Below are positions 1 to 52,496 of a stretch of DNA of 64,000 nt, in pieces. Within the stretch, counting starts at the first letter, position 1. Every line of letters begins with the position of its first letter. The stretch lies in NCBI GenBank assembly GCA_965644295.1, contig CBFFRP010000173.1, forward strand, positions 1 through 64,000. The letters are read 5' to 3'. Both the position numbers and the translations under genes were made by a program. Below the pieces are notes generated by a model, which saw only the letters and a program-made list of their open reading frames with translations, was not told the DNA's origin and ran no database searches. Origin of the DNA: Paraphysomonas bandaiensis (taxonomy: Eukaryota; Protista; Chrysophyceae).

Positions 1-3000
1 GGATTACTCGTGGGTCCGCGTTGCCGTGGCTGCACCAAGTTGATGTCCGATATGCCTTTGATGTGACCCTGAGAACTCCTGAGATAGGAGTCCCATCGGG
101 CGAACCATGCAGTGATGATTTCGTGGGTGGGGGTGGTTGCCGGGGGGCCGCGCCATCCATGCCGTTTGTATCCAGCAGAATTGAACATCTTTTGGATAAT
201 CCGCAAAACCATGAGCATTCCTTCCTGTATTACTCTCATTTCCGGGGAAAAGCCATTCTTGAACTTTGAGCGTGTGCGCTGACAACGTTCGTGTAGGCGT
301 GTGCTATGTGTACATGCAGGACGCTTCGCCTCAAGCGAAGCCTGGAGGGTTATGTGATGGATGGCCGCTAGTCTGTTGGCTGCCACCTCAGGAGGGAGTA
401 TGGCAGTCGATCCGTTGTCTAAATGTGGTAGTTGTGCATGAAGTTGGAGGAGTCTTGCGGTGTATGCCTGTACTTCCTTGGAGTCCTTCGGGTTTACATT
501 GAGACGGGGGGGGATTCGGAGGTGCGACTCAGGTGGTCGAGGGTCAAGATTGACTGGTACGGTGAAACCGACCCAGACCGGTCGATGATCGAAGGCTGCT
601 GCGAGTAATGAGGGGGAGTCAAGGCAGCCAGTGTCCGTAACAGACATGTTCGGAGGTAACGGCGTGTGTAGAATATGATCGATCCGCGATATTCCTTTGT
701 CTAATCTGTGGAAGGTATGATATGTTTTCCTGGGTAGGAGAAGCTCATGGAGTGGTGCAGCCAGTTGGAGTTTGTCGGCAAGTGGTCGTATGTCTCTGCC
801 TTTAGGATTTGTCTCCATGGAGCCATTGAAGTCGCCGGCGACAATGACAGTATGGTCCTTGGCTCTGGCCTTAGTGACCCATTTCGTAAGGATGTTGCAT
901 AGGAGCTTGTAGGGGTCAGCAGTACAGATACCACGGGACGCTCTCCTAGCTTGGTCAATTTGCTCCATAATGTGCAAGTGCCTGGCGTGGATGGCTTCGG
1001 GGGTAGATAGACGCTTATTAGTACTAGGGTGTGCGCCACCGACGTTTTGAACTCTAGTCGGCTCACTAAACCAAGTCCCGTAAAGTCAGCCTTTGTGAAG
1101 GCGAGACGGCGCTTCCAGTATTCGCTGATTATGACTACTGTACCCCCCATTAGTGGGTCTCTTGAAGTCAGTTTTGGCTGCTTGCTGAGGAAGAGGCATA
1201 TTCTTGTTCCTGGAGTGCATCTTCGATGATACGCGTGAAGAAGTTGGCCTGAGTTTCTGTTAGACGGACATCCTGTAATAGGAGCACGTCCAATTTTGCC
1301 GCTTAAAGTGTCGGATGATAGCTTGGGCTTTACCTGTGTGTGATGCCGGATTGCCATTTGTGTTCCATGTGGAGAGTCGGAGTCCCATGGCTGCTCCCGA
1401 GGGATCCTTGGGGATGCTGCTGGAGGGTCTCTGTAGGAGTTCCACTCTTGTCTGCAAGGAGTCTGTCCCATACTGCTATATTGGCACCGCCTATGTCGCT
1501 GTCGCACGCAGCCCTGGCTTGGATTAATATCTCAAGTGGCCAGCGTTGATCACACCAATAATGATGTCCGTAGTTGATGAGAAGTTCTTCATCCTTAGCA
1601 ATGGAACGCATTGAACTGGACATAGAGGCGTTTATTTTTCGTGACAAACTTGACATTAGCCATGTTTGTGGCTAGGGGGTCATTAATATACCCAGCTTCG
1701 CATGTTACACATTGTCGGACTTGGTCAAAGCCATCTATTGCGAAGGTACCAGTACTGTCTTGAACTATGTAATCAGAACGCCTTGTAGACTGACTCATCT
1801 TTGTTAGTGGATAGCGTTTGCCTTTGTACTCAGCAATGATGACGTCTGCTGGGAATGTGTTCTTCGCATAAAGGGATAGTCCTTTGGCAGTGTTATCGGC
1901 GTACGCAATGTAGAACTTTCTTGACCAGTCCCTGTCCCAGCCGGTGGTATCTAGTGCTGGAGTTGGTCTGATCGTTCGTGTGGTCGTGGTTGGGTGTGAG
2001 TTGTGAAGGTTCGTTGGTTGGTCACTTTCATCATAATTTACGACCTTTTTGGCTTTCCGGGTTGGCTGGCATCGACTTGTCAACGCAGTTTGAGCGTGTT
2101 TCAACTGCATCTTCTTGTGAGATGGTAGTGCTCCAGGGGTTGAAGCCTGCAGAATCTGTCGAGTTGTTCGTGCTAACTTGGTGCTGCTTGACGAGGTTGT
2201 TCTGGTGCTGGTCATCTTTGATGTCCTATTGTTGTTCGTGATTGAGTCCGCGGGGAGTGTAGGTGGAGCGATGGGGTCAGCCGTTGAGAGTATACTGGTG
2301 GCCAAGGTGTTTTCAAGAGATAGTAGGGCGTTGTCTAGGGCAGTAGAAAGACCGGCAGGGTCTAAGAGGAAGTAGTGAGCATCTTGTAGTATGACATGGT
2401 AGTAGTTATCACGAATAGCGTCCCTAAGTTCGTCCACCTTCCATGCGATGTTATAAGCTACTTTGTCAGTAGGGATGCCTACAATGCTGAGGTAATTACC
2501 ATTTAGCGCCCACGTCGTGCAGGGGTTGATAGTAGAGGCTAAAAGGTGGACCTCTCGCACTGAGAGCCAGTGAGTTATGTCGTCTTCCGTAGTGTATGTT
2601 GTTTTGGTAGGTATTAAAAGTGCGGCCTGTGCGTGATCTAACTTATGTCGTAGTGGCTGAAGTGTGTGATGGGCCATGCACTCCCGTTGCAGTATGTCGA
2701 ACGCTTGGGTGCCTAATGTATTTATGAAAGATGCTAGCGTGTGACGGTCCTTGCGTTGTTTGAGGTCTAATTTTAGACAGGAGCGAGTGTGTCGCCTGCT
2801 TGAAGCAAGAATGTGCAGATGATAGAGTGTGCTGTATGCACAGTACCCATCACTAGGGATATGTTGTTGTGTGCGAAGGGCTGAGGGTCTGAGGGTGAGG
2901 CGGTAGACTCTGCTCATGTCGCACATATGGAGCCTGAGTTGTCGACGGTCCGTGGGGTTCATCTGTCGTAGTTGACGTCGAGCTCTCGGTGACAAGGAGA

Positions 3001-5581
3001 CTGCAATTACTTCCCTCTGTTCCTGTTGCTCTCTGTGCTCATGTGGCATAGGTGGTACAGTTGACGGCTCAGAAGTCCAGAGGATATTGGTGCTCTGTCT
3101 GGAGGTCTGGTGTTGTAGAAAACAGGATAGCCGCTCCTGAGTCCGTGTTAGAGCGTGCATGATGCAGGTGGGGATATTTGTTGCATTGAGTATGTGAAAC
3201 CCATGCTGGCTGCGTATGATGTCATGGGTTACCACAGTGTTGGTAGAAGCGTGCACTGTTAGTGCCTGTCTGGAGAATGGTGACAGCTGTGCCCAACCAG
3301 GCGCCAGGTGCGGTTGAACAGCGTCCCATAGTCTGTATGGTATGGAGAGAAGATCGAGTAGCAGTTGGAAATCCTCCGTGTCTAGATGTAGTCCTGTGTG
3401 TGGAGTCGAGGATTCATATTGCATGAGTGTCTTACGGAGACTAACAGTGGCTGTTGAGGGAATACCCTTTGTCAGGCAAAGGGTCCGCACATGCCTAGAT
3501 ACAACATGAGTGGAGTCTGCCCAGGGTTTGTTGCCATTCGCGAGATGCTGGGCAACTAGTAGGGCGCTGTGCGTGGTATCCAATTTGTGCTCTGGTAGCG
3601 TGAATGATATCATGAGATCATAGTTGTCCGTCCTGGAAGCCTTGGCTATGAATCCTTCCCATATGTCTGTACAGGCAGGGGATAGCATGTGTGCATATAT
3701 TTCTTTTAAAAGGTTTCCCTGTGGGGAGGCAGCAATGGTTTGGGTTTCATCATATCTAACCCAGTTGTTCAGCAGATCGGAGTGAAAGGGCGTGTGACCC
3801 CAGCCCTCTGTGTAGTGTACAGGGGTGTGTGGCAATGTCCTTGGGCAGTGCATCCGGCCTGATGTCAGGAGTGGTAGTGGAGTGTGAGGATGGGCCGTCT
3901 GGGGCTAATGCTAGAGTTCCCATGGTGTTCAGTTGAGTAGGGTTGGTGGTAGGTGGCCTCCGTTTGACTGGGAAATAGTCAAATAGAGTTGCATACGGTG
4001 TGGTGGCATCCTTAGTGGGTAAGGGTAATGTGTGGGTGGATTTGCTGGGTCCGTCACCGCTGTTATCGGAAGAGAATTCCTTCCCCTGAAGGGCGTGGGA
4101 GGGATGGTTGATGGACCTGGCACGATGTACTCCTTGCATTCCCTTGGAATGATATTGCAACACATTTTGGAGACGCATGATGACGAGGTCAGGAATTCTC
4201 TCGAGTAGCGCGTGTAGTTCCAACTCCACCGGGTATTTGGTGTCCAGGAAGAAGTGGTCGTTGGAGCAAAACACATCATAAGATGGAAGGAATTGAGTTT
4301 GTGGAAGGAAGGAGGAATGGTGGGTAGACCAGTACGCCCAGTTGTGGCCAAGGTCCACTGGTGAATCTTGCCAGATACGAATTCGTATACTCAGGGTTTC
4401 TGCCAGGAGGGCTATGATGTCTGTGTAGCCCCATTGCTCTGGGGGTATTCCGACAGCAGTTGGTCGTTTGCGGCGTAGTGCTTTGTTGTACGTTGTTAGC
4501 TGCTGTCGGAGCTTCTTCCGGATGCATGCAAAGTTAAGCATCTTGGCTTCAGCGAGCGTGTAGGTACTAAGTACCGTCCTGCTTGTCTGAATGACTTGGA
4601 GCAGTTTTGCTTTCGAGGCTGGATCATCGGGATTTAAATACGGGTAGTGGTCCTCCTCCGGTTGTTTGTGGTATATTGCGGCAATAGCAGCTAGTCCGCA
4701 GAAGCCCTCCATTGGTGTGTTGTTGTATTCTGTGTGTGTGTAGTGACGTGCAACCAGCATTTTCCCCTCCTCAAGCGAACATCTGAGGTGCTGTTCTATG
4801 CGTTCTAAAGCGTGCCTCGATTGTAGCATGGACATGACACTGTGAACCACCTCTTCGTGTATGGCAATGGCTAACAGACCGCTGGGCGAGTAGAAGGACC
4901 AATTCTGCAGTCCGGGGTCCGTGAAGGCAGCTGGCAGAGGGTGCGGCACAAATAGTTGAGGCAGTACACTTGTGTCAGTGATTGTTCTCTCTTGTTCGTC
5001 CTCCACTGTGGGCGGAGGGAGGCAAATAGTATGTGTGGAGTCTTCTGGACGGGGGGTGCTGTAACAGCTGTGGGTGCTGTGTCAGGTATAGGAGTGGTCA
5101 CGATGTTGTGTGTGTCTACACACTGTTGTGCCAGGTGTTGTAAATGCTCTCGCCATGCTTGCTTGTTGTGGGCACGGATGCGGAGCTTGTTTCGTGTCTG
5201 TTGACGTTGTATGTGTGGAGGGAGGGACTGGATTGTTCCTTCACGAAATTGTTGCAGAGTTCGTTTGCGACTGAGCCGCCGGAGGTTGTTTCGCTTACGT
5301 TGTGTCGAGGCCGGCCGTTTTCGTGGTCCATCACCACTATTATCACAGGAAAAGTGCGGTCCTTGATGCCTTTTCGTGGGATGTACACTGGTGGATCTCG
5401 ACTGTTTGTCTGGCGGTTTACGTGGTGGACGCATGTGGGTGCTACAGGCGAAGGTCGTTGTGTCAGGTGAGGGCCCACTATGGATATGTAAGTGTGGACT
5501 GGGGGATAACCACGTGTGAGCAGCTGCGGACACTTCTATGAGTGTACGTTTGATGTTCGTTGTGTCCCAGTCCAGTAGGAG
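1..5581 (-). CDS. Retrotransposon ORF2 polyprotein (OTU-like x2, SET, APE; continues off-window), broken by single-base frameshifts
   Basis: ORF-track pieces 4871-5533, 3756-5006, 1595-3853, 1330-1656, 1260-1457, 701-1507 and an unlisted open frame from about 945 to 1 join into one protein via +/-1 shifts near 5010, 3825, 1620, 1455, 1295, 1210 and 945. Confidence 0.8.
560..1390 (-). other. APE (exonuclease-endonuclease-phosphatase) domain of ORF2
   Basis: Manual translation gives ordered motifs LRLSTWNTNG, LDVLLLQDVR, GGTVVII, LISVYLPP, VIVAGDFN (GDFN 825-836), TF..SRIDHIL (~670-715) and FDHRPV (DH 585-590). Confidence 0.92.
1555..1920 (-). other. SET domain within retrotransposon ORF2
   Basis: Motifs KGLSLYAKNTF..VIIAEYKG, DYIV..IDG, AGYINDP..NVKF, then after one frameshift RSIAKDEELLINYGHHYW, matching SET motifs GxG, RFxNH and ELxxDYG..YW. 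Confidence 0.88.
2365..2860 (-). other. OTU-like cysteine protease domain 2 within ORF2
   Basis: IPSDGYCAYSTL (Cys 2840-2842), HWLSVREVHLLA, YHVILQDAHYFL (His 2375-2377), in the OTU order DGxC...W....E...HY. Confidence 0.75.
4245..4720 (-). other. OTU-like cysteine protease domain 1 within ORF2
   Basis: TPMEGFCGLAAIA (Cys 4698-4700), QWGYTDIIALLAETLSIRIRIW, YDVFCSNDHFFL (His 4254-4256). Confidence 0.72.
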
Positions 5582-8122
5582 TCAGTTGGAGTCGGAGCCG
5601 AAGATGTCCGAGTCCACCCGAGAGTGTTCTTCTGAGGACCTTTCTGGGATACTGTGATCTACCTTGTTTTTATAGTAATCAAGTACCGTGAGAGTCGCCC
5701 CAGCATCGATCTCATAGAGAGCTGCAACCGCGTTTTCCATTTGCGCGAGGATGGCATGGATTTTTGACAGAGGTACAAGATCTGAAGCGATGTGTAGAGC
5801 TATTTCGCAGAGCTCTGGGCAGGTGGGAGCTGGTGCTGGCTCTGTTGATGGGGATGTGTCCATCTGTCGCTGTCGTTTGGGAGTGTACGATCGCGGTGTA
5901 TCGGTCTGCATTTGTGGAGCAACAGTTGGACCGAAGGGTTGAAGGGACGTTGGAGGCGGTATTATGGGAGGGGCGTTTGTTGCTGTGTCTGTGGCCTTAT
6001 GGAGGCCGTATAGAAACCGCTGAGTAGGGAGGCCAGGGGGGACTGCTATGGTGTGATAGAGGAGCCTTAGAGTTTCGTCACCCAGAGCTTTGCGCAGTAA
6101 AGGCACGATACCTGTGCGTGAGATTTCCCAACAGAGTTTGATCTTGGTATTCCTGTCGTCCAGGTAAATGTAGGTTTGTTCAACTAAGCGTTCTTTTTCT
6201 TTGCGCCCGCTTGTGAGTGGGTTGCGGGCGGTCCAAATGATGTCCTCTATGTCCGTGGATGGGATACCTATGGCCTCACAGGCTTGCCAGACTTGGATGG
6301 GAGATAGGAGTGTTTCAGAGCAGACAGCGATGCGGAAGAGTTCTTGAGACGGTGTCCAGTTGGACTGCTTTTGCGTGGGTGTTTCAGTGCTGACCATTCT
6401 ACAACAGAGTGAGCCGAGGTTGATTTCGACATGTCCTCCTATTTCATTATTGAAGAGTGCTTTATAGAATTTAGCTCTTAGATCCTGATCGTGAATGGGA
6501 TCGTGGAGTAATAGAATCTGATAGAACCTATATGTTTTATCAGTGGCTCGAGTCTTGCCTCTATAGTGTGTTAGAGTCCAGAATACTTCGTATAGAGGTA
6601 GCGTGGGGAAACCTCCCGTTCGGAGAAGCATATCCAGCGTGTTTCGTAACCTAAAGGCATGTGCAGGTCTGGTGTGCGCTGAGTCTGCATGTAGCCCATA
6701 TATAGCCGCCACTGGTATCAGCGAGGGCTCATCCTTGGTGCGACCCACGAAGAGTTCTCGTGGCGTTCGGAAAAGTGATATCTGGACATGTCGGCGTTCG
6801 GTCCGAAGGAGGCCTTTGTCATCGACTGATGTGCCCGTTTCTACATGGAGGTCAAAGCATAGAGGGGAGGAGTACATACATGAGTCAGCGGTAACATTCG
6901 CTCCCATGCCCTGTCGGACTTCGTACCCAGGTCTGCCTAGGTCGAACGCTCGGACTACCCTACTCGCTGTGGGAGCGGGTAAGTCTGAACACGTTCGTGC
7001 ATCCTTGGCTGCCCTGAAGGTAGCGATGTCTTGGGGGGTAGGGGGTTGAATGGGAAACCCCAACTCATGGATAAGGTAGTGTGTTATCCCCAGGAAGGTG
7101 GCATCATCAGCAGCTTTTATGTTTGTAAGGACGAGTGTTTTGTACTCTCCCACAGGTAGGTCATTTTCCCATCCCAGAAAGGTGCGTACCGATGGGAGCT
7201 GTAGCTGGGGAGTGTCAGCTTTGGCTTTCTTCTGTTCTCTGATAGCATTTTTGATCTGCGCATCAATGTTGGTTGGTTGATAGGAGGGGGGAAGAACAAA
7301 CTTTGGAGTGAAGGTTCTGGAAGTGTTGGAATTTGTTTCACGTTTCATTGAAATTGTGTCGAAGTTGCTTCTAGAGAGTGTTGGTGTATATCTGTATGTG
7401 AACCGAGTGTTGTTGCGCAAGAGACTTAAGCGTGAACTTTGGGGCCTTGCATAGGTGATATACTCATAACCAGCAAGATTGAGTGGGTGTGTGTTGGTAG
7501 GGTATTGATGGGGTCCGGGGCTACGTGGTGTACCGCATGCTAGCACCGTTTTTGTGTGGTATACATCCTGTAGGGCACTGTAGTACAGTAGCCGAATATA
7601 CCGTATGCGGAATACAGTGTCTGTCCAATAAGAGGAATGGGCTGAGGGAGTGATAGGTGAACAGAATGAGGGGGTAACCTGCTGGATGCATAGACCACAG
7701 AGAAACCATGTTGGGTTGTTTTGTGTGGACATCAGGAGGCAGCCCTGTAGCTCAGTTGTGAGGGTTCGAGAGTATTCTGTGACCATATGGAGAGCACCAG
7801 AGGATCTTTTGCGTGGACCTGCTCGCACGAGCCACGTTTTGAGTGGTTGTAACCGTAGAATTCGATAGGTGAGACTATGATGTCTACTGATGTGATGGCA
7901 TATGAATGCGGTAAGCGCTGCATTAGTGCAGGCACGTGGTTTAGCCGAAGCCGTTAGGTTGGGTGGAAGTCGCAAAGCCAGGCAGTGAGGCTTGGAACGT
8001 GTACAACGTGGTAAAACAAGAGATTTGTCGGAGACGAGGTGATCAGCAAAATGTGGCCGAAGAGAGGGAGAAGAGGCCCTAGGCACACTGACATGACTCA
8101 TCCATACCCTTAATAGGGACAT
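5582..8122 (-). CDS. Retrotransposon ORF1 (gag-equivalent), up to 846 aa; may start at the ATG at 7348 (MKRETNS)
   Basis: Long uninterrupted intronless ORF directly upstream of the APE-bearing ORF2. No zinc knuckle is recognisable, so the call is positional. Confidence 0.65.
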   Translation of the reverse strand: MSLLRVWMSHVSVPRASSPSLRPHFADHLVSDKSLVLPRCTRSKPHCLALRLPPNLTASAKPRACTNAALTAFICHHISRHHSLTYRILRLQPLKTWLVRAGPRKRSSGALHMVTEYSRTLTTELQGCLLMSTQNNPTWFLCGLCIQQVTPSFCSPITPSAHSSYWTDTVFRIRYIRLLYYSALQDVYHTKTVLACGTPRSPGPHQYPTNTHPLNLAGYEYITYARPQSSRLSLLRNNTRFTYRYTPTLSRSNFDTISMKRETNSNTSRTFTPKFVLPPSYQPTNIDAQIKNAIREQKKAKADTPQLQLPSVRTFLGWENDLPVGEYKTLVLTNIKAADDATFLGITHYLIHELGFPIQPPTPQDIATFRAAKDARTCSDLPAPTASRVVRAFDLGRPGYEVRQGMGANVTADSCMYSSPLCFDLHVETGTSVDDKGLLRTERRHVQISLFRTPRELFVGRTKDEPSLIPVAAIYGLHADSAHTRPAHAFRLRNTLDMLLRTGGFPTLPLYEVFWTLTHYRGKTRATDKTYRFYQILLLHDPIHDQDLRAKFYKALFNNEIGGHVEINLGSLCCRMVSTETPTQKQSNWTPSQELFRIAVCSETLLSPIQVWQACEAIGIPSTDIEDIIWTARNPLTSGRKEKERLVEQTYIYLDDRNTKIKLCWEISRTGIVPLLRKALGDETLRLLYHTIAVPPGLPTQRFLYGLHKATDTATNAPPIIPPPTSLQPFGPTVAPQMQTDTPRSYTPKRQRQMDTSPSTEPAPAPTCPELCEIALHIASDLVPLSKIHAILAQMENAVAALYEIDAGATLTVLDYYKNKVDHSIPERSSEEHSRVDSDIFGSDSN

Positions 8123-8220
8123 TGAGCTTAAAGCTGGTTAATAAGGTGAAACTTTGTGTTGAACGGTATTTGCCACCGTAGGGCAGAGAAAGATTGCTCG
8201 ATATTATTATAATATATGTC

Positions 8221-8616
8221 AGTGCTCAACTCTGAAGTCCTACTATTTAACGCTACGAAAGCTGCTTGTTCGTCACCGCAAGCACCAAGGTGCAACCACT
8301 TTCGCTCTATCACTCAAAGCAAACGCAGCGAGCAAGCAGACTGTTGATATACCTGACAGCAGACAACCCAATACCGGATGCCATTGACGTGGGCCCATTC
8401 CCGGATGCCTGTTTATTCATCAAGGCCTAAAGACGTCTACACAAGTGACACTAATTAATGTCCCTTGTACCATACAACACACAAGCATTTGGCTATAAAT
8501 AGGCAGAACGTTGTCTGCCGACTATATTTGCAGCTCACGTTAGTTTTCTGGAGAAATATATCCGGCACTTATTCCCATAACACCACGAAACGGTGCGATT
8601 CCGACTTTGTTGTGGG
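8221..8616. mobile_element. Dispersed non-coding repeat family A, copy 1
   Basis: Alignable by eye to 29917-30226 and 56302-56491. Shared blocks: caagcaccaaggtgcaa, ggatgcctgtttattc, acacaagcatttggctat, acaccacgaaa..ccgactttgttg.ggg. Confidence 0.85.
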
Positions 8617-12055: not shown

Positions 12056-13277
12056 ATGTATGTATGTATGTATGTATGTACGTATGTATGTATGTATGTA
12101 TGTATGTATGTATGTATGTATGTATGTATGTATGTATGTATGTATGTATGTATGCATGTATGTATGTATGTATGTATGTATGTATGTATGTATGTATGTA
12201 TGTATGTATGTATGTATGTATGTATGTATGTATGTATGTATGTATGTATGTATGTATGTATGTATGCATGTATGTATGTATGTATGTATGTATGTATGTA
12301 CGTATGTATGTATGTATGTATGCATGTATGTATGTATGTATGTATGTATGTATGTATGTATGTATGTATGTATGTATGTATGTATGTATGTATGTATGTA
12401 TGTATGTATGTATGTATGTATGTATGTATGTATGTATGTATGTATGTATGTATGTATGTATGTATGTATGTATGTATGTATGTATGTATGTATGTATGTA
12501 TGTATGTATGTATGTATGTATGCATGTATGTATGTATGTATGTATGATGTATGTATGTATGTATGTATGTATGTATGTATGTATGTATGTATGTATGTAT
12601 GTATGTATGTATGTATGTATGTATGTATGTATGTATGTATGTATGTATGTATGTATGTATGTATGTATGTATGTATGTATGTATGTATGTATGTATGTAT
12701 GTATGCATGTATGTATGTATGTATGTATGTATGTATGTATGTATGTATGTATGTATGTATGTATGTATGTATGTATGTATGTATGTATGCATGTATGTAT
12801 GTATGTATGTATGTATGTATGTATGTATGTATGTATGTATGTATGTATGTATGTATGTATGTATGTATGTATGTATGTATGTATGTATGTATGTATGTAT
12901 GTATGTATGTATGTATGTATGTATGTATGTATGTATGTATGTATGTATGTATGTATGTATGTATGTATGTATGCATGTATGTATGTATGTATGTATGTAT
13001 GTATGTATGTATGTATGTACGTATGTATGTATGTATGTATGTATGTATGTATGTATGTATGTATGTATGTATGTATGTATGTATGTATGTATGTATGTAT
13101 GTATGTATGTATGTATGTATGTATGTATGTATGTATGTATGTATGTATGCATGTATGTATGTATGTATGTATGTATGTATGTAGGTATGTATGTATGTAT
13201 GTATGTATGTATGTATGTATGTATGTATGTATGTATGTATGTATGTATGTATGTATGTATGTATGTATGTATGTATG
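12056..13277. repeat. (TATG)n microsatellite, about 1.2 kb
   Basis: Near-perfect tetranucleotide array with sparse CATG/TACG variant units. Confidence 0.99.
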
Positions 13278-29916: not shown

Positions 29917-30226
29917 AGTGCTTAAATCTGATATCCTACTATTCGGCGCTACGAAAGAGCTGCTTGTGCATTACCACAAGCACCAAGGTGCAATCACCCC
30001 AATACCCCGGATGCCTGTTTATTCGTCAAGGCCCAAAGATGTCTACACAAGTGACAAGGGACACTTATTAGTGTCCCTTGCACCACACAAGCATTTGGCT
30101 ATATAAGTGGGCAGAACAATATCTGCACTATCTATATATGCGGCTCAAGTTAGTTTCCCAGCGAAATATCTCCGGTACTTATCCCCAGAACACCACGAAA
30201 AGTTGAGAGTCCGACTTTGTTGAGGG
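29917..30226. mobile_element. Dispersed repeat family A, copy 2
   Basis: Homologous to 8221-8616. Contains hairpin caagggacac-ttatta-gtgtcccttg and ends gagtccgactttgttgaggg. Confidence 0.85.
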
Positions 30227-37175: not shown

Positions 37176-40100
37176 TTATTCTCCGGTACGTATAGCATAA
37201 GCCACCGGTAGAGTTTCACTGCAGACTTTGTTTTCTTCTGGGGCTGAGGGATTTGTATTGGCTATTGGGTTCAATACAGGTTTCTGCTCAGTTGGTTGGC
37301 CTGAACGCCTGTCCTGTACGCAGCAGAAAAAACAGAAGAAGCAAAATACACAAACTCCGCAAACTATGACAACAGGGAATACAATAATAACAATTGTATT
37401 GTTGTCAAAGGTGTCATCATCAGCATTAGGGTCATGCGGTAGCGAAGGCACGGTACTTGAAGAAATAGTGGGCACTGTGCTTGGAGAAGGAGTATCTATA
37501 GCAACAGTAGATCCGTACAGAACATAGCTCGATCCCGCAGAATCAAGTCCACTAGGATCAGCCTGCCCTGCACCAATTACCAAGTCAGGAGCACGATCGC
37601 CATTAATATCAGTACCAAAGCTGACAGCAGAACCAGTATTATCCCCACTTTGTAAGCCGTTGATGACAAGTCCTGTAGAAACGTCTAAGCTGTTCAAATA
37701 AAATGTACCGTTTCGCTGCATATCAAGACTATCGTATAGGACATATACAGCACCAGTTGACTCTCCATGTGAATCAGCGTTAGGAGACCCAATAACAACA
37801 TCATTCCTCGGACCACCACCAAAATTCCCATTGGCAACAACTGTTGTTCCACTGTGATCATAATCTGCACAGCCAATAATTACATAACTGGCGTTATTCA
37901 CGCTTGGTATTTCGTCACCCACTTCCATCGTATGCCACCCGTACATAAGATAGGTTGCACCGTTCTCAATAAATCCGTTGTTCGACGAATGTGGCGCTCC
38001 AATAGCAATATCATTATAACCATCGTCATTTATATCCCCCGCTGCGCTGACAGAGTGTCCAAACCTATCTTCTGGTTTCTCTCCATAAAGAATCCAACCA
38101 TTGCTTCCATCCAACGCTGCTGCATCTATCGACCTATTAGTTCGATGTCCTCCGAATATAACGTACACCGCACCAGACCTGTAGGCACTGGGTGCCCCAA
38201 CTGCCAGGTCTTCGAAGCCATCTCCATTCATATCGCCCACAGATGATAAAGAGAACCCAGTTTCATCACCAGCCGCAATGCCATCAATCACAAACCCACG
38301 GCATTCACTTAAATTAGATAGCATTATCATATTTGAGGCAGCGATATCATTTCCACCAAACAAAATATATACAGAACCACTCTGGTTGTTTCCGCCTTTA
38401 ATTGCACCGATGGCAATGTCGTCAAAACCATCCGCATTAATGTCACCAGCTGAGCCCACAGCGTATCCCATCATTTCGTTGTCAGTAACGCCTTCAATAA
38501 CAAGCCCATCCATGCTGTCAACAGTCACTACCCCACTGCTTCCAACAGCACTTCCACCAAATATTACGTATGCCATTCCAGCAGATCCAGCATTCGGCGC
38601 ACCAATAATGACATCATCAAAGCCGTCGCCATTACAGTCTGTGAACCCAACCGAAAATCCGAAGTTATCAGCAACACCCATACCATCTATAACAAACCCT
38701 GTTTGACCATCAATGTAACTGTCATCGAATTCAGGATCACTTGTTTGACCACCAAATATAATAGTGACTGATCCTCGCGTCGTTGAGTTCCCAGGAGAAC
38801 CCACAACAATATCCGCCATTCCATCACCATTAATATCTCCATTGCAGCTGATGGCATAACCACTCTGAGATCCCGCTGTATTTCCATCAAATACAAAGCC
38901 ATTGTTACCGTTTAATTCGCTCAAATCGCATGCTCCCCCAGTGCATATGTGCTGTGTAGGTGATAAAGATGGCATGTGCGTGTGGCCAGAATAAACGTTA
39001 AACAAGATAGACGTTGCGCCTGTACTTTCGGAATTTATCGAAGTCACCACTACATCAAGTTGTCCGTCAGCATTCATATCTCCAACACCAGCCACAGCAT
39101 ATCCGCTATTGTCATCTGCAGCAGCACCGTTGATAGAAAATCCACTACTTCCATCGAGCTGACTGACGTAATAAACACCACTGGTTACACTATTTACAAA
39201 TACCACATAGCTCGTGCCTTCATTATCTGAGTATGGGTCTGCATACGGTGCTCCCGCAACAATATCATCAACACCGTCATGATTAATATCACCAGCACAG
39301 CTCACCGAGTACCCTAAACCGTCATAATAATCAATGCCATATATAATAAAGCCATCTGGGCCAGATAGCGCACTCATAGAAACTGCGCCAGTGCTTCCAA
39401 TTGATGGGCTACCGTACATGACATACACTGCTGATGCTCCAAGCACAATATCATTGATACCATCGCCATTGACATCACAGCCAGTAACGGATTCGACAAC
39501 ATGTGAACACGATGATTTAAACCCATCTGATCCGTCTAGGTCCGCTACTCGGATGATTCCAGCGTCCACACCGGTACCTCCAAGGAAGCTAGAGCCAAAT
39601 ATTACACAGTCATCAACGTACACATCATCGTAGCCGTCATTATTTACATCACCAATACTATTTAAAGGGTAGCCAAAAAGGTTTGACGAACCAACAATTG
39701 TTATGCCATTTGTGCCATCAAAATTTTCCAGCACAAGTACACCTGCATCGCCCACAGAGGAGCTGCCATAGACTACGAAAGCCACCTCTAACGCAGGTAG
39801 TCCAATCATAAAGTCATCGAAACCATCACCATTTATATCACCCGCCTTTCCTTGATATCGGCCTATATTCAATGAATCCGTTGCACCGTCGGGAGCAACA
39901 ATAACGAATCCGTTTTTTCCATCTAAAGTTGTGACGTCAAATACTCCATTGCTACCGATAGAACTTCCTCCAAATATAACGTAACTTTCACCCATATTAG
40001 AAGCAGCATATGGGGCACCTATAACTAAATCATTAAAGCCATCACCGTTGATATCGCCAGCACCACACACGGTGTACCCGCCCTCACCACCACTATCGAA

Positions 40101-43100
40101 CCCTAGTATGGTAAAGCCATTTATTCCATTGAGCGTATTTAATGACTGAACTGCAGTATTTCCTAGAGAACTGGAGCCAAATATGACATAACTACAACCG
40201 GAATTGCTTGTAGAAGCAAATGGTGCACCAATAATTAAGTCTGGTAGCCCATCACCATTGATATCACCAAGTGCACTTACAGAATACCCACTTTGGTCAC
40301 TGTTTCCCTCGCCCATCCATGTCATCCCATCCACACCATCCAACTCATCAATATCAACAGGGTTGACAAAATGAATCGCAGGAAAGGATGGAGAAAGTGT
40401 CAGTGGCTCCAGTGTCGGTACAGGAGAGTAGTTGGGAGACTCTGTTTGTGGCGGTGTAGATGTACAAAATATTAAATATACTGCGCCACGATCATTGTTT
40501 GCATATGACGCTGCAGTCACAACATGTGACCCCACCCCAAGCACCTGAGAGCCAGAATTATCACCATCATCAACGCCGTTCATCGTAAAGCCGTTGGAGC
40601 CATCAATATCCCCTAGACGAAATTGGCCACTCGGTACAGATACTGCAAATATCGCAGCTGTTTCACCAACATTCTCATCATCGCCGATATCCTGGTACGG
40701 AAGGCCAAGAATGAAGTCAGCAATACCATCATGATCGATGTCACCAGCACAGCTGGTGGCCTTGACAAATCTCGCTTCAATTATAAATCCATCTTGACCA
40801 GATAAGGTGTCTAAATCGACTAATCCACTACTTCCCACGCCATCCCCACCGAAAAGCACATACGTCCTCTCCGAACTGCTACCACCATCCGCCACAATGA
40901 TATCAAAGCTGCCATCTCCGTTTACATCACACCCACCGGCCACGGACGAAATTATATTATACAATCCGCAGCTTATTCTAAAACCATTGGTTCCATCTAG
41001 ATCTGCCAATTCAAAGTAACCAAATTGAAATCCACTCCCAGCGATATCTGGTGCACCAAATATAATATAAACATAACTATTCGATAGCCCAAATAAAATG
41101 TCATCATACCCATCTCCATTGAAGTCGCCTGCTGTATCTATATGAAAATCATTGTCGCATCCACCACAGTGGTGGCCAGACTCGATAACAAAACCATTGT
41201 AACCATCAATATCATCAATATATAACAAGCCAGTTCCTCCTACAGCCTCGCCCCCAAATACGACATACAGATTTGCGTTTTCGCAATCGCAGGTAAACAT
41301 AATATCATTGTATCCGTCACCGTTGACATCGCCAGCCCTACTAACTCTATATCCAATATCACCCAAAGAGCTTCCGCGTATAGTGAATCCATTTGACCCA
41401 TCAAGAGTGTTTAAATATACAACACCAGAACTGCCAACAAAAGTGCCACCGAACAACACATAAACTTCCCCTGACGACGACACACCGTTTGGATCGGCAT
41501 AAGGTGCCCCGATAAGTATATCATCAAACCCATCCCCATTTACATCACCAGTACCACTCACCGTCCACCCACAAGCGTTAGCGTTGTTCACACCCCGGAT
41601 AACATATCCGTTGCTGCCGTCCAGATCGGACAATGACATAGACGAAATGGACGTGAGGCTTTCTTGACCGAGTACGACATACACAGCACCCTCGTCGTTG
41701 GCATAAGGAGATCCAATCAGTATATCAAGCTCACCATCACCGTTAACATCCGCTGTCCCGAGAGCATAACCTGCCTTGTCGCCACTGCTCTCTCCGTTAA
41801 TCGTAATACCTTCACCGGCTTGCATAGATTGCAGCTCCAACGGGTTTGTGCACTGCAACAAAGAATCGGCAGTTGGGGAAAAAGTATCATCTGTAGTTGG
41901 TGTAGCTGTAACCTGCGTTGTGGGAGGGACTGTATTCTGCAGGTCTGACGTGCAATAAATTAAATACGACTCTCCTTTTCCATCATTAGCGTTATACGCT
42001 GTTATCAGGACATCGTCGAGGAGGTCACCGTTGACATCACCCACACCAGCCACTACCCATCCCGAGTAGTCGTAAGAATTAACCCCATATATGGTATATC
42101 CGTTCCCCCCATTTATTCCATCTAACGAAATCACTCCATTCTCATCGTACCCACTAAATATTACATACGTCTCGCCCTCGTAAGTACTGTGGGGGGCTGC
42201 CGTGTAGGCCCCAATTAAGATATCATCTAAACCATCTAAATTCATGTCACGCGCACAGCTGACAGAATTTCCAACTGATCCACCTGTTCCTTCTATAATT
42301 AACTGCTCTTCACTCGTGAGTTCGTTGACATCTATACTTCCTGTGTTTCCTACTTCCCCCCCTCCGTATATCACGTGCACAGTGTTGGTAGTTATATCCC
42401 CAGCGACAATATCGTGATTGCTGTCGCCATTCACATCACATCCCCCAGATATGGACGATACATCCATGCCCCCAATTGTGAACATGTCTAGATCATGTAC
42501 AATGCAGTTACCTGAGGTGCACATATCACCTGATCCAAACACCACGAGTGTTTCATCATTTCCAACAATAGCTATGTCATCGTAGCTATCGCTGTTTATA
42601 TCTCCTACTGAAGACACGATGAAACCAAAGTTATAATCATCTCCCACGACGTTAAATCCATCAGATCCATTAAGGCTATTAACGAGAAGCGCACCGGACG
42701 ACCCGACATTCTCTCCACCATACACAACAGTCAGTGTTTTGGCCGAGGGAGCAGATATATACAAATCACTATAGCCGTCGTTGTTGACATCCCCACTGCT
42801 ACTGCTATATCCCAAATGCCCACCAGTAGTTGAACCGCGGATTATAAATCCATTCACACCATTGAGGGTACTAGTGTATAAAGATCCACCACTCCCCACT
42901 TCGGGTCCGCCAAATATGACGTAGGCTTCCCCAGCACCTGCCACTCCTGCTGGGTCAGCATCGGGGCCACCAATCAACACGTCGTCAAAACCATCCCCAT
43001 TGACATCACCAGCACCACTCACAGACCACCCGATATTCTCATACCCATCAGCACCGTATACTCTGAAGCCATTCGATCCGTCCAAGTCACGCAGAGAGAG

Positions 43101-43388
43101 TGTGAGTGTATCTGTCAGATGCGACCCTCCAAATACGATATACGTAGAAGTACCATAACAGTTACTGCACCGGTCAGATCCGAGCACAATATCATTGACT
43201 CCGTCCCCGTTAATGTCGCCTAATGAGCTGGCAGAGTACCCCGAATAGCTGAAGTATCCTTCCAGCACAGTGCCCTCTCCTGTCTGGAGATATGACAGCT
43301 CTAGAGGGCTAGAGCAGATGCTTCCGGTGGTCCTCACTGCTGATGAGATGAGCAGGAGCAATGAGAGCAACATGGTGATTGTTCGCAT
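37176..43388 (-). CDS. Intronless 2070-aa type I membrane protein with about four FG-GAP (integrin-alpha-like) beta-propellers
   Basis: Signal peptide. Many G.SVS..GDxNGDG.DD..IGAP...G..YVIFG blades in four modules separated by P/S/T linkers. TM IVIIVFPVVIVCGVCVFCFF and a short tail. Confidence 0.93.
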   Translation of the reverse strand: MRTITMLLSLLLLISSAVRTTGSICSSPLELSYLQTGEGTVLEGYFSYSGYSASSLGDINGDGVNDIVLGSDRCSNCYGTSTYIVFGGSHLTDTLTLSLRDLDGSNGFRVYGADGYENIGWSVSGAGDVNGDGFDDVLIGGPDADPAGVAGAGEAYVIFGGPEVGSGGSLYTSTLNGVNGFIIRGSTTGGHLGYSSSSGDVNNDGYSDLYISAPSAKTLTVVYGGENVGSSGALLVNSLNGSDGFNVVGDDYNFGFIVSSVGDINSDSYDDIAIVGNDETLVVFGSGDMCTSGNCIVHDLDMFTIGGMDVSSISGGCDVNGDSNHDIVAGDITTNTVHVIYGGGEVGNTGSIDVNELTSEEQLIIEGTGGSVGNSVSCARDMNLDGLDDILIGAYTAAPHSTYEGETYVIFSGYDENGVISLDGINGGNGYTIYGVNSYDYSGWVVAGVGDVNGDLLDDVLITAYNANDGKGESYLIYCTSDLQNTVPPTTQVTATPTTDDTFSPTADSLLQCTNPLELQSMQAGEGITINGESSGDKAGYALGTADVNGDGELDILIGSPYANDEGAVYVVLGQESLTSISSMSLSDLDGSNGYVIRGVNNANACGWTVSGTGDVNGDGFDDILIGAPYADPNGVSSSGEVYVLFGGTFVGSSGVVYLNTLDGSNGFTIRGSSLGDIGYRVSRAGDVNGDGYNDIMFTCDCENANLYVVFGGEAVGGTGLLYIDDIDGYNGFVIESGHHCGGCDNDFHIDTAGDFNGDGYDDILFGLSNSYVYIIFGAPDIAGSGFQFGYFELADLDGTNGFRISCGLYNIISSVAGGCDVNGDGSFDIIVADGGSSSERTYVLFGGDGVGSSGLVDLDTLSGQDGFIIEARFVKATSCAGDIDHDGIADFILGLPYQDIGDDENVGETAAIFAVSVPSGQFRLGDIDGSNGFTMNGVDDGDNSGSQVLGVGSHVVTAASYANNDRGAVYLIFCTSTPPQTESPNYSPVPTLEPLTLSPSFPAIHFVNPVDIDELDGVDGMTWMGEGNSDQSGYSVSALGDINGDGLPDLIIGAPFASTSNSGCSYVIFGSSSLGNTAVQSLNTLNGINGFTILGFDSGGEGGYTVCGAGDINGDGFNDLVIGAPYAASNMGESYVIFGGSSIGSNGVFDVTTLDGKNGFVIVAPDGATDSLNIGRYQGKAGDINGDGFDDFMIGLPALEVAFVVYGSSSVGDAGVLVLENFDGTNGITIVGSSNLFGYPLNSIGDVNNDGYDDVYVDDCVIFGSSFLGGTGVDAGIIRVADLDGSDGFKSSCSHVVESVTGCDVNGDGINDIVLGASAVYVMYGSPSIGSTGAVSMSALSGPDGFIIYGIDYYDGLGYSVSCAGDINHDGVDDIVAGAPYADPYSDNEGTSYVVFVNSVTSGVYYVSQLDGSSGFSINGAAADDNSGYAVAGVGDMNADGQLDVVVTSINSESTGATSILFNVYSGHTHMPSLSPTQHICTGGACDLSELNGNNGFVFDGNTAGSQSGYAISCNGDINGDGMADIVVGSPGNSTTRGSVTIIFGGQTSDPEFDDSYIDGQTGFVIDGMGVADNFGFSVGFTDCNGDGFDDVIIGAPNAGSAGMAYVIFGGSAVGSSGVVTVDSMDGLVIEGVTDNEMMGYAVGSAGDINADGFDDIAIGAIKGGNNQSGSVYILFGGNDIAASNMIMLSNLSECRGFVIDGIAAGDETGFSLSSVGDMNGDGFEDLAVGAPSAYRSGAVYVIFGGHRTNRSIDAAALDGSNGWILYGEKPEDRFGHSVSAAGDINDDGYNDIAIGAPHSSNNGFIENGATYLMYGWHTMEVGDEIPSVNNASYVIIGCADYDHSGTTVVANGNFGGGPRNDVVIGSPNADSHGESTGAVYVLYDSLDMQRNGTFYLNSLDVSTGLVINGLQSGDNTGSAVSFGTDINGDRAPDLVIGAGQADPSGLDSAGSSYVLYGSTVAIDTPSPSTVPTISSSTVPSLPHDPNADDDTFDNNTIVIIVFPVVIVCGVCVFCFFCFFCCVQDRRSGQPTEQKPVLNPIANTNPSAPEENKVCSETLPVAYAIRTGE

Positions 43389-51199: not shown

Positions 51200-52496
51200 T
51201 TAGAATGCAAAGCAATTGTAAAATAAATATTATATTTTTTAATGAAATTGAAAGATGAAATATATTTTGCATTAAGTACACGCATAGAGGCCTGATATTC
51301 AGAAAGAATTGAGTGCTTTAGATAAGAAAATAGAAGACATGAAAAATTTATCATCAGACCTTCAGACAAAAATGATAAACAAGTATCTTTATTGAATGAA
51401 AGGCAATTAATTGTGCTTAGCAATAAAGACGAAGAAAAAAGAAGCGAATTGTTAAAGGAATATGATTATCAACAAGGAGAATATCATCATCATGATTCAA
51501 TAGGATGGAAGTAATTTTTTAAAATAAATATTATATTATAATATACTTATATATGGATAGCCTAAAATGGGATATAAACTGTAATAATTATAGACTTAGA
51601 AAACCTCGTACTTTTGACAATACAGTAGAGGGCCGTTATTATATAGTGATATATAAAAGTGTTCTGCTTTTGTTACTTTGTCAAAATTAATATCTTTTAC
51701 ATCATTGAACTTATTTTTCTTCATACGATTATACGTAATTTTTACTGCAAGATGGTAACTAATGGATTACAGATTTTAGACATTGAACTGAGCTATTTGA
51801 ATAATGTAAGTGGTAATATTCAGACACAAATAAAAACGACTAACATAAACGATATATCTACTAATGCATACAATATAGAGACGTTGAGATATTCCACTGT
51901 GTGTGTTTATAGTTCACTAAGTACTCTAAAATCCAGCAATAAAATTGAAGGCTACTTGCAATGCTTGGCTAATAATTGCAATTTGCAATTATTATTGTTT
52001 GATACTTGTCACCAATTTATTGTTAGGCGTTAGGCAAGCCTAGTAAAATTGTATGTTTATTAGCAATAGACGTTTGAGAGTCAGTACCAGCTTAGTAGCT
52101 AGATTAACAGACTAGTCAAAGCTAGATAAGCATTTACCGTAAGCTAACTAGTATTACTCTAATATCCTACTATATAACGCAAGCTTGCCGATGCGTAATA
52201 CGACAGAAGCTACTCTGTATGAACGTACGTCATTACGGCTCTTTATACAGGTAGTCACTAAACATTATTGGCCCCTATCTGGTCATAATACTCTTCTGGC
52301 CCTAGCACGTAACCAAGACTACTAGCTAATTCCGTCGCACACTACTATGTATTTATTGTATCTGACGAATGACTATGAGACATTAAAATCAGCTCCCCAT
52401 ATTTGACACATATGGCTTGGTATTAACTTAAAACATCAATTTCAAATATCGCACTAATAGTGTGATATATATACGTACATATCAATCCACTAGTCG

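Follow-up and report, generated by a model that had tools for sequence, protein, structure and literature searches.

What kind of mobile element carries a SET domain and two protease-like domains ahead of its endonuclease, and what could these domains do for it? The question is raised by the first 8 kb of the window, a stretch of 64,000 nucleotides of Paraphysomonas bandaiensis DNA, where an earlier note had placed a giant LINE (positions 1-8130) encoding a SET methyltransferase and two OTU-like proteases. A non-LTR retrotransposon of approximately 12.2 kb occupies the minus strand of positions 1-8194 with its 5' two-thirds. Intact copies of this length, 99% identical, are present in contigs L002, L006 and L008 from Tara Oceans and other marine metagenomes; their coding part consists of ORF1 (846 aa) and ORF2 (3114 aa), with an in-frame TGA between them. 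These natural copies were used as reference, and residue numbers are those of the intact ORF2 (L002:3176-12517); the six ORF2 frame pieces of the window (5581-4874, 5081-3759, 3904-1598, 1671-1333, 1531-704 and 1085-3, all on the minus strand) were searched separately. Private to the window copy are 46 substitutions and eight indels (near 5057, 3820, 1617, 1427, 1298, 1207, 947 and 38), and the frame changes in its ORF2 are due to these indels. These differences reflect slight decay of the copy or errors in sequencing. The coordinates of all features are given in Table 1.

Six or more insertions with differing 5' flanks were found at 99% identity, and contigs of independent origin, differing in sample and assembler, show the same structure. 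Their 5' junctions put the start of the element near 8194 and not at 8130, so that the LINE proposed earlier is there but its span is corrected. No LTRs or TIRs are present, with no direct or inverted repeats of at least 30 bases in L002. The element also has no poly(A) tail, and the 3' end of L002, judged by eye, is short and TAA-rich. Target-site duplications were sought at the insertions, and none was clearly readable. The element is a recently active APE-type LINE, and the compact genome around it is that of a marine protist and not human. Elsewhere, the window contains short tail-like fragments of the element and a host FG-GAP ORF. The 71-nt stretch upstream of the 5' end is probably left over from an earlier, truncated copy or from a short repeat sharing the tail; as RNA, this 3' UTR module was not consistently more stable than its shuffles.

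Table 1. Features of the element in the window and their correspondence with the intact ORF2.
Feature	Position (strand)	ORF2 residues	Remarks
Stretch similar to the 3' UTR	8238..8308 (-)		71 nt; 94% to L002:12564-12634 (internal 3' UTR of the element); 44 nt upstream of the 5' end
5' end and short 5' UTR	8123..8194 (-)		Shared sequence opens with ATCTTTCTCTGCCC; 5' junctions of six insertions align here
ORF1	5582..8122 (-)		846 aa; TGA at 5584-5582
Inter-ORF stretch	5435..5581 (-)		49 codons from the ORF1 TGA to the first ORF2 ATG; open in the ORF1 frame
ORF2	1..5434 (-)	1 to ~1812 of 3114	Reading broken by 8 private indels and the window edge
Junction motif 1	5324..5365 (-)	24-37	QGPHFSCDNSGDGP
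Cys/His domain 1	4209..4739 (-)	233-409	Cys246 at 4700-4698; His394 at ~4256-4254
Junction-type motif 2	4047..4097 (-)	447-463	QGKEFSSDNSGDGP
Uncharacterised region	2885..3998 (-)	~480-850	One 53%-identical fragment, P0017
Cys/His domain 2	2330..2881 (-)	852-1035	Cys865 at 2842-2840; His1020 at 2377-2375
SET	1567..1882 (-)	1185-1289	Window copy split by a 1-base insertion near 1617
APE-type endonuclease	561..1370 (-)	1355-1625	Three private 1-base deletions in the window copy
Start of the APE-to-RT linker	1..560 (-)		Conserved among relatives; cut by the window edge

On the intact ORF2, the domains follow the order GDGP motif, Cys/His domain 1, GDGP motif, uncharacterised region, Cys/His domain 2, SET, APE, linker, RT (FADD), RNase H-like domain and CCHC. 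The order that had been read from the window is thus borne out, with approximately 1350 residues ahead of the APE where about 1400 had been estimated. The window edge cuts ORF2 approximately 240 residues ahead of the RT; the RT, the RNase H-like domain, the CCHC and the 3' UTR all lie off the window. An RT had been expected beyond the APE, and it was found in the intact copies L002 and L006 (RVT_1, 55 bits against a cut-off of 29.6, ORF2 2049-2342), with FADD at residues 2259-2262 and matches to human L1 ORF2p structures in the PDB (E=1e-7). It is followed by an invariant D-E-D-H-D pattern and the CCHC. The RNase H-like domain gave weak RNase H matches in the PDB by profile only, and was recognised neither by Pfam nor by a single-sequence PDB search. 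Together, these domains of the full-length copies establish the giant LINE. For the endonuclease, Exo_endo_phos scores 37.6 bits in the intact copies (cut-off 24.5, ORF2 1355-1592), and from the window's own pieces Pfam recovered nothing but its C-terminal half (E=5e-5). The motifs GDFN, SRIDHIL and DHRP are found, and the Glu of 'QET' is Asp clade-wide. Pfam recognised no domain in ORF1; an identical protein (P0001) belongs to a 17-member marine metagenome cluster, and BLASTP between the ORF1s of different families gave no similarity. A representative protein search with a 769-aa piece returned nine matches, mainly fragments. The same APE-RT-RNase H-like-CCHC order, with two ORFs and neither LTRs nor poly(A), is found in the I, Tad1, LOA, R1 and Ingi group and in some L1 elements. 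In contrast to these LINEs, the window element has around twice the usual length, the approximately 1350 extra residues before the APE and an ORF1 without a recognisable domain. Like other LINEs, it would move by target-primed reverse transcription.

The order SET-APE-linker-RT-RNase H-like is kept in P0026, P0027, P0031, P0038 and P0039, diverged relatives (around 40% RT identity) which form one clade (SH-aLRT 97) in an RT tree composed of metagenomic relatives alone. SET accompanies APE-RT in all six clade relatives whose sequence extends that far, and the more distant P0062 (24% RT identity) is also SET-APE-RT. The nearest neighbouring lineages found are carriers of Peptidase_C48. Both tandem Cys/His domains are present in P0026 and P0027, and L012 has one; in P0027, which was outside the seed, hmmsearch detected them at 1e-21 to 1e-23. 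The earlier note had asked whether SET and OTU always travel with APE-RT. This holds for SET, and Cys/His domains with GDGP occur in diverged families, but no Cys/His domain was detectable in the SET-bearing P0038 and P0039. Because these two relatives carry SET without it, the function of SET is independent of the Cys/His domain. The notion of a one-off chimera does not fit these data: judged by the recurrence of SET-APE-RT in diverged relatives of a single clade, the architecture is inherited. Scans of metagenome and viral contigs with the SET-APE alignment or protein gave no match.

The SET domain (PF00856) lies immediately ahead of the APE and scores 35.6 bits in the intact copies, against a cut-off of 22.4. 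Its AlphaFold model has a pLDDT of 70-90, and Foldseek relates it to MLL3, SET7/9, SETD8 and PRDM at E ~1e-6; the SET domain noted originally is real. Between the families L015 and L016 it retains 76% aa identity while synonymous sites are saturated. The clade conserves EELxxxYG together with its Tyr, and a GxG-type motif is found in most relatives (KGLSL in the window's element). The cofactor motif 'NH' is 'ND' in most of the clade and AIDE in P0038, and because of the ND reading SET catalysis is uncertain.

In three diverged families (L002, L015 and L016), ORF1 and ORF2 share one frame with just one TGA between them. At the junction, the ORF1 frame is free of stops for 49, 91 and 100 codons, compared with 1-6 in the other frames. 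The inter-ORF stretches of L015 and L016 have 43% aa identity at saturated dS, with dN/dS of approximately 0.4, values which indicate constraint at the protein level on the sequence that follows the TGA. The core of junction motif 1 is FSCDNSGDGP (ORF2 28-37) and that of motif 2 is FSSDNSGDGP (ORF2 454-463). The motif is conserved at the ORF1/ORF2 junction of five families, and GDGP itself is found in six of six instances. In P0039 it lies at residue 537, within an unbroken ORF, while P0026 and P0027 have a single GDGP motif and two Cys/His domains each. A host code in which TGA is reassigned can be dismissed, as TGA ends host ORFs and the ORF2 of the window's element; the ORF2 of L015 and L016 ends in TAG. 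RNA structure 3' of the TGA stands out in L002 (z=-2.4) but not in L015 and L016. This layout suggests a read-through polyprotein that would be processed later, and the in-frame TGA and the junction motif may favour such processing at least as much as the chromatin and counter-defence functions proposed by the earlier note. To our knowledge, TGA read-through is not a known expression route for the ORF2 of a LINE.

The two Cys/His domains are paralogues, with one conserved Cys early and one invariant His late, 147-155 residues apart. The Cys, in a G-x-C box, is kept in seven of seven instances and the His with its aromatic neighbour in eight of eight, the His being one of two invariant columns. 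Between L015 and L016 the domains retain 45-47% aa identity at saturated dS. Pfam gave no match up to E=10, nor did PDB profile searches with four and eight domain instances; a PDB sequence search was blank, and a domain-only search with domain 2 returned one near-identical fragment and no more. AlphaFold reached a pLDDT of 41-48 (shallow alignments without P0026 and P0027), which yielded nothing usable on the OTU question: no Foldseek match fell below E=0.7, a result that is meaningless because of this pLDDT. In these low-confidence models a helix begins at the Cys, and the His lies within a strand. Of the OTU assignment, the Cys and His motifs fit; no tool supports OTU itself, and the Asp expected at Cys-3 is not conserved (D, T, K, D, E, K, R). 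We regard the domains as putative papain-like, possibly OTU-like, cysteine peptidases.

As a joint explanation of these observations we lean slightly towards a LINE moving by target-primed reverse transcription that combines a TGA read-through polyprotein, self-cleaving papain-like Cys/His peptidases and a chromatin-acting SET. ORF2 would be made at least partly via read-through of the ORF1 TGA, giving a polyprotein of approximately 4000 residues. The Cys/His domains would cut it, most plausibly at or near the ...S-x-[DN]-x-x-GDGP motifs, and cleavage would free ORF1p and the accessory modules. SET would remain fused just ahead of the endonuclease, with chromatin where the element inserts, or the element's own copies, as its target, and would serve as a lysine methylase or as a targeting module that binds histone tails. 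The Pro of GDGP would directly follow the putative cleavage point, an unusual position for this residue in a protease site, and counts against protease cleavage there. A bolder version proposes a clade of giant LINEs of marine protists that operate like a small polyprotein system of retroviral style: UGA read-through would yield the polyprotein of some 4000 residues, tandem papain-like proteases of a previously unclassified kind would cut the GDGP junctions, and an active SET would mark histones where the element inserts or in its own chromatin. This version is unlikely as a whole; if true, the element would be the first retrotransposon known with its own histone writer.

Other readings of the junction and of the Cys/His domains have to be weighed against polyprotein processing. 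ORF2 could start at a non-AUG codon or via re-initiation in place of read-through. The GDGP motif may also be a diverged 2A-like ribosome-skipping signal that parts ORF1p from ORF2p, and not a protease site: conserved in five families, it ends in G-P and lies in the N-terminal region of ORF2p, as do the 2A-like sequences of many APE-type LINEs (PMC3708506). However, the NPGP of the D(V/I)ExNPGP signature is missing from every instance, and changes at key 2A positions abolish skipping (PMC3708506), so that we consider skipping decidedly improbable. The motif also differs from the 2A-like peptides in having putative proteases beside it and an in-frame stop upstream. If the domains are enzymes, they could be deubiquitinases or deconjugases, acting on host proteins or on ubiquitinated proteins of the element (counter-defence, chromatin signalling) and not in polyprotein processing. 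They have OTU-type motifs (G-aromatic-C; His then aromatic), OTU proteases without an assigned role occur in Helentrons and Ginger1 transposons, and P0026 and P0027 combine two domains with one junction motif. Against this, OTU membership is unproven, and a processing step would be called for by the in-frame TGA, by the apparent translation between the ORFs and by the conservation of the junction motif; as a replacement for processing, deconjugation is therefore rather unlikely. The two roles are compatible with each other, and viral OTU-like proteases serve in both deubiquitination and polyprotein processing. It is doubtful that the domains are instead a non-enzymatic, fast-evolving module, structural or binding nucleic acid or metal, in which Cys and His serve another purpose. 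The lack of any profile, fold or structure match to peptidases, the mere two invariant columns in eight instances and the lack of the domain in the SET-bearing P0038 and P0039 are in keeping with such a module, but an early Cys and a late His, placed on helix and strand in the low-confidence models, form a papain-like pattern, and a metal site would usually require more ligands.

Chromodomains and PHD fingers steer other retroelements to chromatin, and SET could likewise be a non-catalytic histone-tail binder that steers the endonuclease to particular chromatin. The ND in most of the clade at a position that contacts the cofactor, with the further departure of P0038, would be expected of such a binder, as would the constant fusion directly upstream of the APE and the relative P0058, in which PHD fingers take the place of SET. 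The GxG-type motif of most members, the EELxxxYG and its Tyr and the identity kept at saturated dS are points on the other side, and neither this motif conservation nor the identity argues against catalysis. A binder without activity is possible, though on balance we expect otherwise. Finally, the locus might be no LINE at all: a Helentron-type element, another composite or a chimera made in assembly could join SET, protease and APE, given that an OTU-like protease, SET and a LINE-derived APE endonuclease are reported in Helentrons and proto-Helentron (PMC4067079). Helentrons have a Rep/helicase protein with the APE at its C-terminus and no RT, with SET and OTU in separate ORFs, whereas here neither ORF1 nor ORF2 has a Rep or helicase, and RT, RNase H-like domain and CCHC follow the APE in one ORF of 3114 aa, in independent contigs and in relatives that keep the order. 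The RT rules out a Helentron, and a composite or chimeric origin of any kind is extremely improbable.

Among known systems, gammaretroviral Gag-Pol is expressed by read-through of a single in-frame stop, and viral polyproteins are cut by papain-like or OTU-like proteases. The in-frame stop between structural and enzymatic ORFs and the Cys/His domains encoded in cis are alike in the window element, but here the mode of expression is predicted from sequence. In this clade, LINEs with Cys/His domains built in are likely to be expressed as a read-through polyprotein, which is otherwise typical of retroviruses and RNA viruses. As in the window element, a cysteine-protease-type module lies inside a non-LTR ORF in NeSL/Utopia (Ulp1/C48) and Dualen. 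The residue order of C48 is His-Asp-Cys, whereas here the Cys precedes the His, two copies of the domain are present and a SET accompanies them; the NeSL/Utopia endonuclease is restriction-like (PMC4640811).

Retroelements capture chromatin readers (chromodomain, PHD, MBD) and DNA methylases. Capture of DNMT is described for retroelements of dinoflagellates and charophytes (PMC5890265) and that of MBD for arthropod Copia, an LTR element (PMC6673714). The captured domains in these elements are of host type, as in the window element, but act on DNA methylation, whereas here a histone-type SET is fused to a LINE endonuclease. A literature search found no SET-bearing LINE and no LINE with a histone-type lysine methylase, and we could not find the combination of SET and two Cys/His domains ahead of APE-RT described for any LINE. 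The shared-frame ORF1-TGA-ORF2 layout with a GDGP motif at the junction is new here. With an active SET, the element would establish or remove its own chromatin state as it integrates, which is directly relevant to how transposons evade silencing or turn it to use. The family is young, with copies 99% identical, and abundant in ocean metagenomes, and its intact natural copies make the proposed activities directly testable.

The element at the left end of the window is a LINE whose core is an ordinary APE-RT-RNase H-CCHC arrangement. Its ORF1 has the same sequence as P0001, which represents a cluster of 17 proteins drawn from Logan and ENA marine metagenomes, Tara Oceans samples included, and three metagenome contigs that carry the whole element are 99% identical to the window across 8.2 kb. 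In two of these (L002 and L006), the 846-aa ORF1 is followed by a single unbroken ORF2 of 3114 aa. The window edge cuts ORF2 at residue ~1812, ahead of the RT; the intact copies contain the RT domain beyond this point, as expected by the earlier note, which had described a giant LINE with SET and two OTU-like proteases ahead of its APE. The order of parts that it gave is correct on the intact ORF2. In its RT region the element resembles human L1 ORF2p structures (E=1e-7), and the RNase H for which the note proposed a search is represented by an RNase H-like domain with a D-E-D-H-D pattern invariant in 11 relatives, for which nine of ten weak PDB matches are RNase H (E ~0.9). One start, ATCTTTCTCTGCCC (window position ~8194), is common to six insertions whose 5' flanks are unrelated, which marks the family as dispersed and young. 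No direct or inverted repeats were found at the ends of L002. In the endonuclease, the Glu of the 'QET' motif is replaced by Asp (x-D-x-R; ORF2 ~1388-1394, window ~1270-1250) here and in 11 of 11 close relatives checked (P0026-P0045), and is retained in the distant relative P0062.

Coordinates of the element, its domains and a gene elsewhere in the window (ORF2 residues numbered on the intact L002 copy)
Feature	Location	Strand	Details
ORF1	window 8122-5582	minus	846 aa
ORF1 stop TGA	window 5582-5584	minus	
Inter-ORF stretch	window 5435-5581	minus	
Motif FSCDNSGDGP	ORF2 28-37		
Cys/His domain 1	ORF2 233-409		
Motif FSSDNSGDGP	ORF2 454-463		
Unknown region	ORF2 ~480-850		
Cys/His domain 2	ORF2 852-1035		
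SET	ORF2 1185-1289		Pfam 35.6 bits (cut-off 22.4)
APE	ORF2 1355-1592		Pfam 37.6 bits (cut-off 24.5); to ~1625 by motifs
RVT_1	ORF2 2049-2342		Pfam 55 bits (cut-off 29.6); FADD 2259-2262
RNase H-like domain	ORF2 around 2540-2697		
Cx2Cx8Hx4C knuckle	ORF2 2849-2866		by eye
Whole-element contigs	L002; L006; L008		13.0 kb; 12.8 kb; 12.3 kb (cut at one end)
Junction regions	L002:3026-3175; L015:1244-1519; L016:1441-1743		
FG-GAP repeat protein	window 37176-43388	minus	single 2070-aa ORF, at least 14 FG-GAP repeats

The window copy stands out by its composition, with a G+C content of 50-52% and a strong strand skew in the first 8.2 kb versus ~40% in the rest. Downstream of ORF1, six open stretches in shifting frames on the minus strand reach base 3; searched separately against Pfam, they match only the C-terminal half of the APE endonuclease (E=5e-5). 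This copy has 46 private substitutions and eight private indels of 1-2 bases, the latter being the cause of all the frame changes bridged in the earlier note. As the indels fall both in and outside homopolymer runs, the copy either has decayed slightly or bears read errors.

The SET domain predicted ahead of the APE was borne out. AlphaFold modelled ORF2 residues 820-1300 with pLDDT 70-90 across the SET portion, and Foldseek matched the model to MLL3, SET7/9, SETD8 and PRDM domains (E ~1e-6). The EELxxxYG motif, including its Tyr, is kept across relatives, and most clade members have ND in place of the usual NH motif, with P0038 deviating more. The domain thus belongs to the SET fold, with putative methylase activity.

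No tool bore out the OTU label for the other two domains. These are genuine paralogues: P0026 and P0027 have two copies each, in the same positions, and a profile made without P0027 detects both of its copies (1e-21 to 1e-23). An alignment of eight instances has only two invariant columns, one of them a His that precedes Tyr or Phe; every one of the seven instances covering the site has the Cys of P-x-x-G-[YFL]-C, 147-155 residues from the His. Nothing was found for these domains in Pfam, even at E up to 10, nor by profile searches of the PDB; the AlphaFold model has pLDDT 41-48, which makes Foldseek from it meaningless, and the Asp at Cys-3, the source of the OTU look in domain 2, is not conserved. 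Since no tool recognises them as OTU or a known peptidase, we named them putative papain-like Cys/His peptidase domains. The observation in the earlier note was confirmed and its interpretation partly supported; the OTU label and the functions proposed there, in chromatin or in defence against host ubiquitination, stand as hypotheses.

The architecture is inherited and is no one-off chimera. Among 39 relatives found with the RT/RNase H part of ORF2, five (P0026, P0027, P0031, P0038 and P0039) are ~40% identical to the element in that part, share its SET-APE-linker-RT-RNase H-like order and form one clade with it (SH-aLRT 97, quick maximum-likelihood RT tree). All six clade members with sequence upstream of the APE have SET, the remaining members ending at contig ends. 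The accessory region has been conserved together with APE-RT, as seen for SET and, in P0026 and P0027, for the paired Cys/His domains; in P0038 and P0039, SET is present and no Cys/His domain was detected. SET-APE-RT is also found in P0062 (NCBI assembly, 24% RT identity, 119-member cluster), and short fragments carry Cys/His-SET (P0024/L012) or SET-APE (P0019 and P0023). Neighbouring giant LINE lineages (P0041, P0044, P0048, P0053, P0056 and P0058; ORFs of 1500-2800 aa) have Peptidase_C48 (Ulp1-like) or, in one lineage, PHD fingers, and not SET. P0048 has a SET-like stretch close to its C-terminus.

Between the contigs of P0026 and P0027 (L015 and L016), synonymous sites are saturated along the entire element, and amino acid identity falls from 88% in RT and 86% in APE to 76% in SET, 45-47% for the two Cys/His domains and 23% in ORF1. 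Selection thus maintains every part ahead of the APE, with faster evolution there than in the core enzymes.

A point beyond the earlier observation is the arrangement of the ORF1/ORF2 junction. In three diverged families (L002, L015 and L016), ORF1 ends in a single TGA, which is followed by 49, 91 and 100 stop-free codons, respectively, in the frame of the called ORF2, versus 1-6 stops in the other two frames. The inter-ORF stretch has 43% amino acid identity and a dN/dS of ~0.4 between L015 and L016. Host ORFs terminate in TGA, and the ORF2s of L015 and L016 in TAG. The shared open frame, the constraint and the use of TGA as a host stop argue that the sequence past the TGA is translated, most simply, judging from sequence, by read-through. 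Just past this stretch is the motif G-x-x-[HFY]-x-S-x-[DN]-x-x-GDGP (six instances, five families), which the window element carries a second time, between Cys/His domain 1 and the unknown region; in P0039 it occurs at residue 537 of an ORF without any stop. Read-through would yield a polyprotein, which the putative Cys/His peptidases may cut at the GDGP junctions. In other APE-type LINEs, 2A-like skipping peptides occupy this position (PMC3708506); unlike these, the motif lacks their NPGP signature. In L002, a stem-loop ~8 nt past the TGA (L002:3036-3115) folds better than 200 of 200 shuffles (z=-2.4); no such excess of stability is seen in the corresponding parts of L015 and L016.

OTU, SET and a LINE-derived APE are known from Helentrons (PMC4067079); these have Rep/helicase and no RT, whereas the element has an RT, so a Helentron reading was rejected. 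Accessory proteases are known in LINEs, as with Ulp1 in NeSL/Utopia (PMC4640811). The nearest functional parallels are retroelements that have captured DNA methylases and MBD domains (PMC5890265, PMC6673714). Within the full-text literature searched, no LINE with a SET domain was found, and neither SET nor OTU is mentioned in an opinion piece on accessory domains of retrotransposon polyproteins.

The genome around the element is compact and protist-like, and is not a human one. Ordinary eukaryotic genes, among them serine carboxypeptidase and the ATP synthase beta subunit, appear as long ORFs, and no tRNA or Rfam matches were found in the window. Near the FG-GAP ORF are ORFs with C-type lectin and polysaccharide lyase, and with L-type lectin, fn3 and TIG, a putative cluster of surface or adhesion genes. 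An (ATGT)n microsatellite of 1.2 kb (12056-13277; 306 units, 97% matches) causes the stacked overlapping ORFs on both strands and the composition spike there. Stretches derived from or related to the element's 3' UTR (78-94% identity) are present at three sites, all on the minus strand (8238-8308, 29932-29997 and 52086-52180), the first lying 44 nt upstream from the 5' end of the window copy, and related sequence lies in the 5' flank of the L006 insertion (L006:1-66). Old truncated copies, or a short repeat with the LINE tail in common, could explain them; the 71-nt piece does not exceed shuffled sequence in stability. Window 44755-44987 matches the 5' flank of the L002 insertion (L002:5-241) at 89%, a further repeat family common to both, suggesting that their hosts are identical or close relatives.
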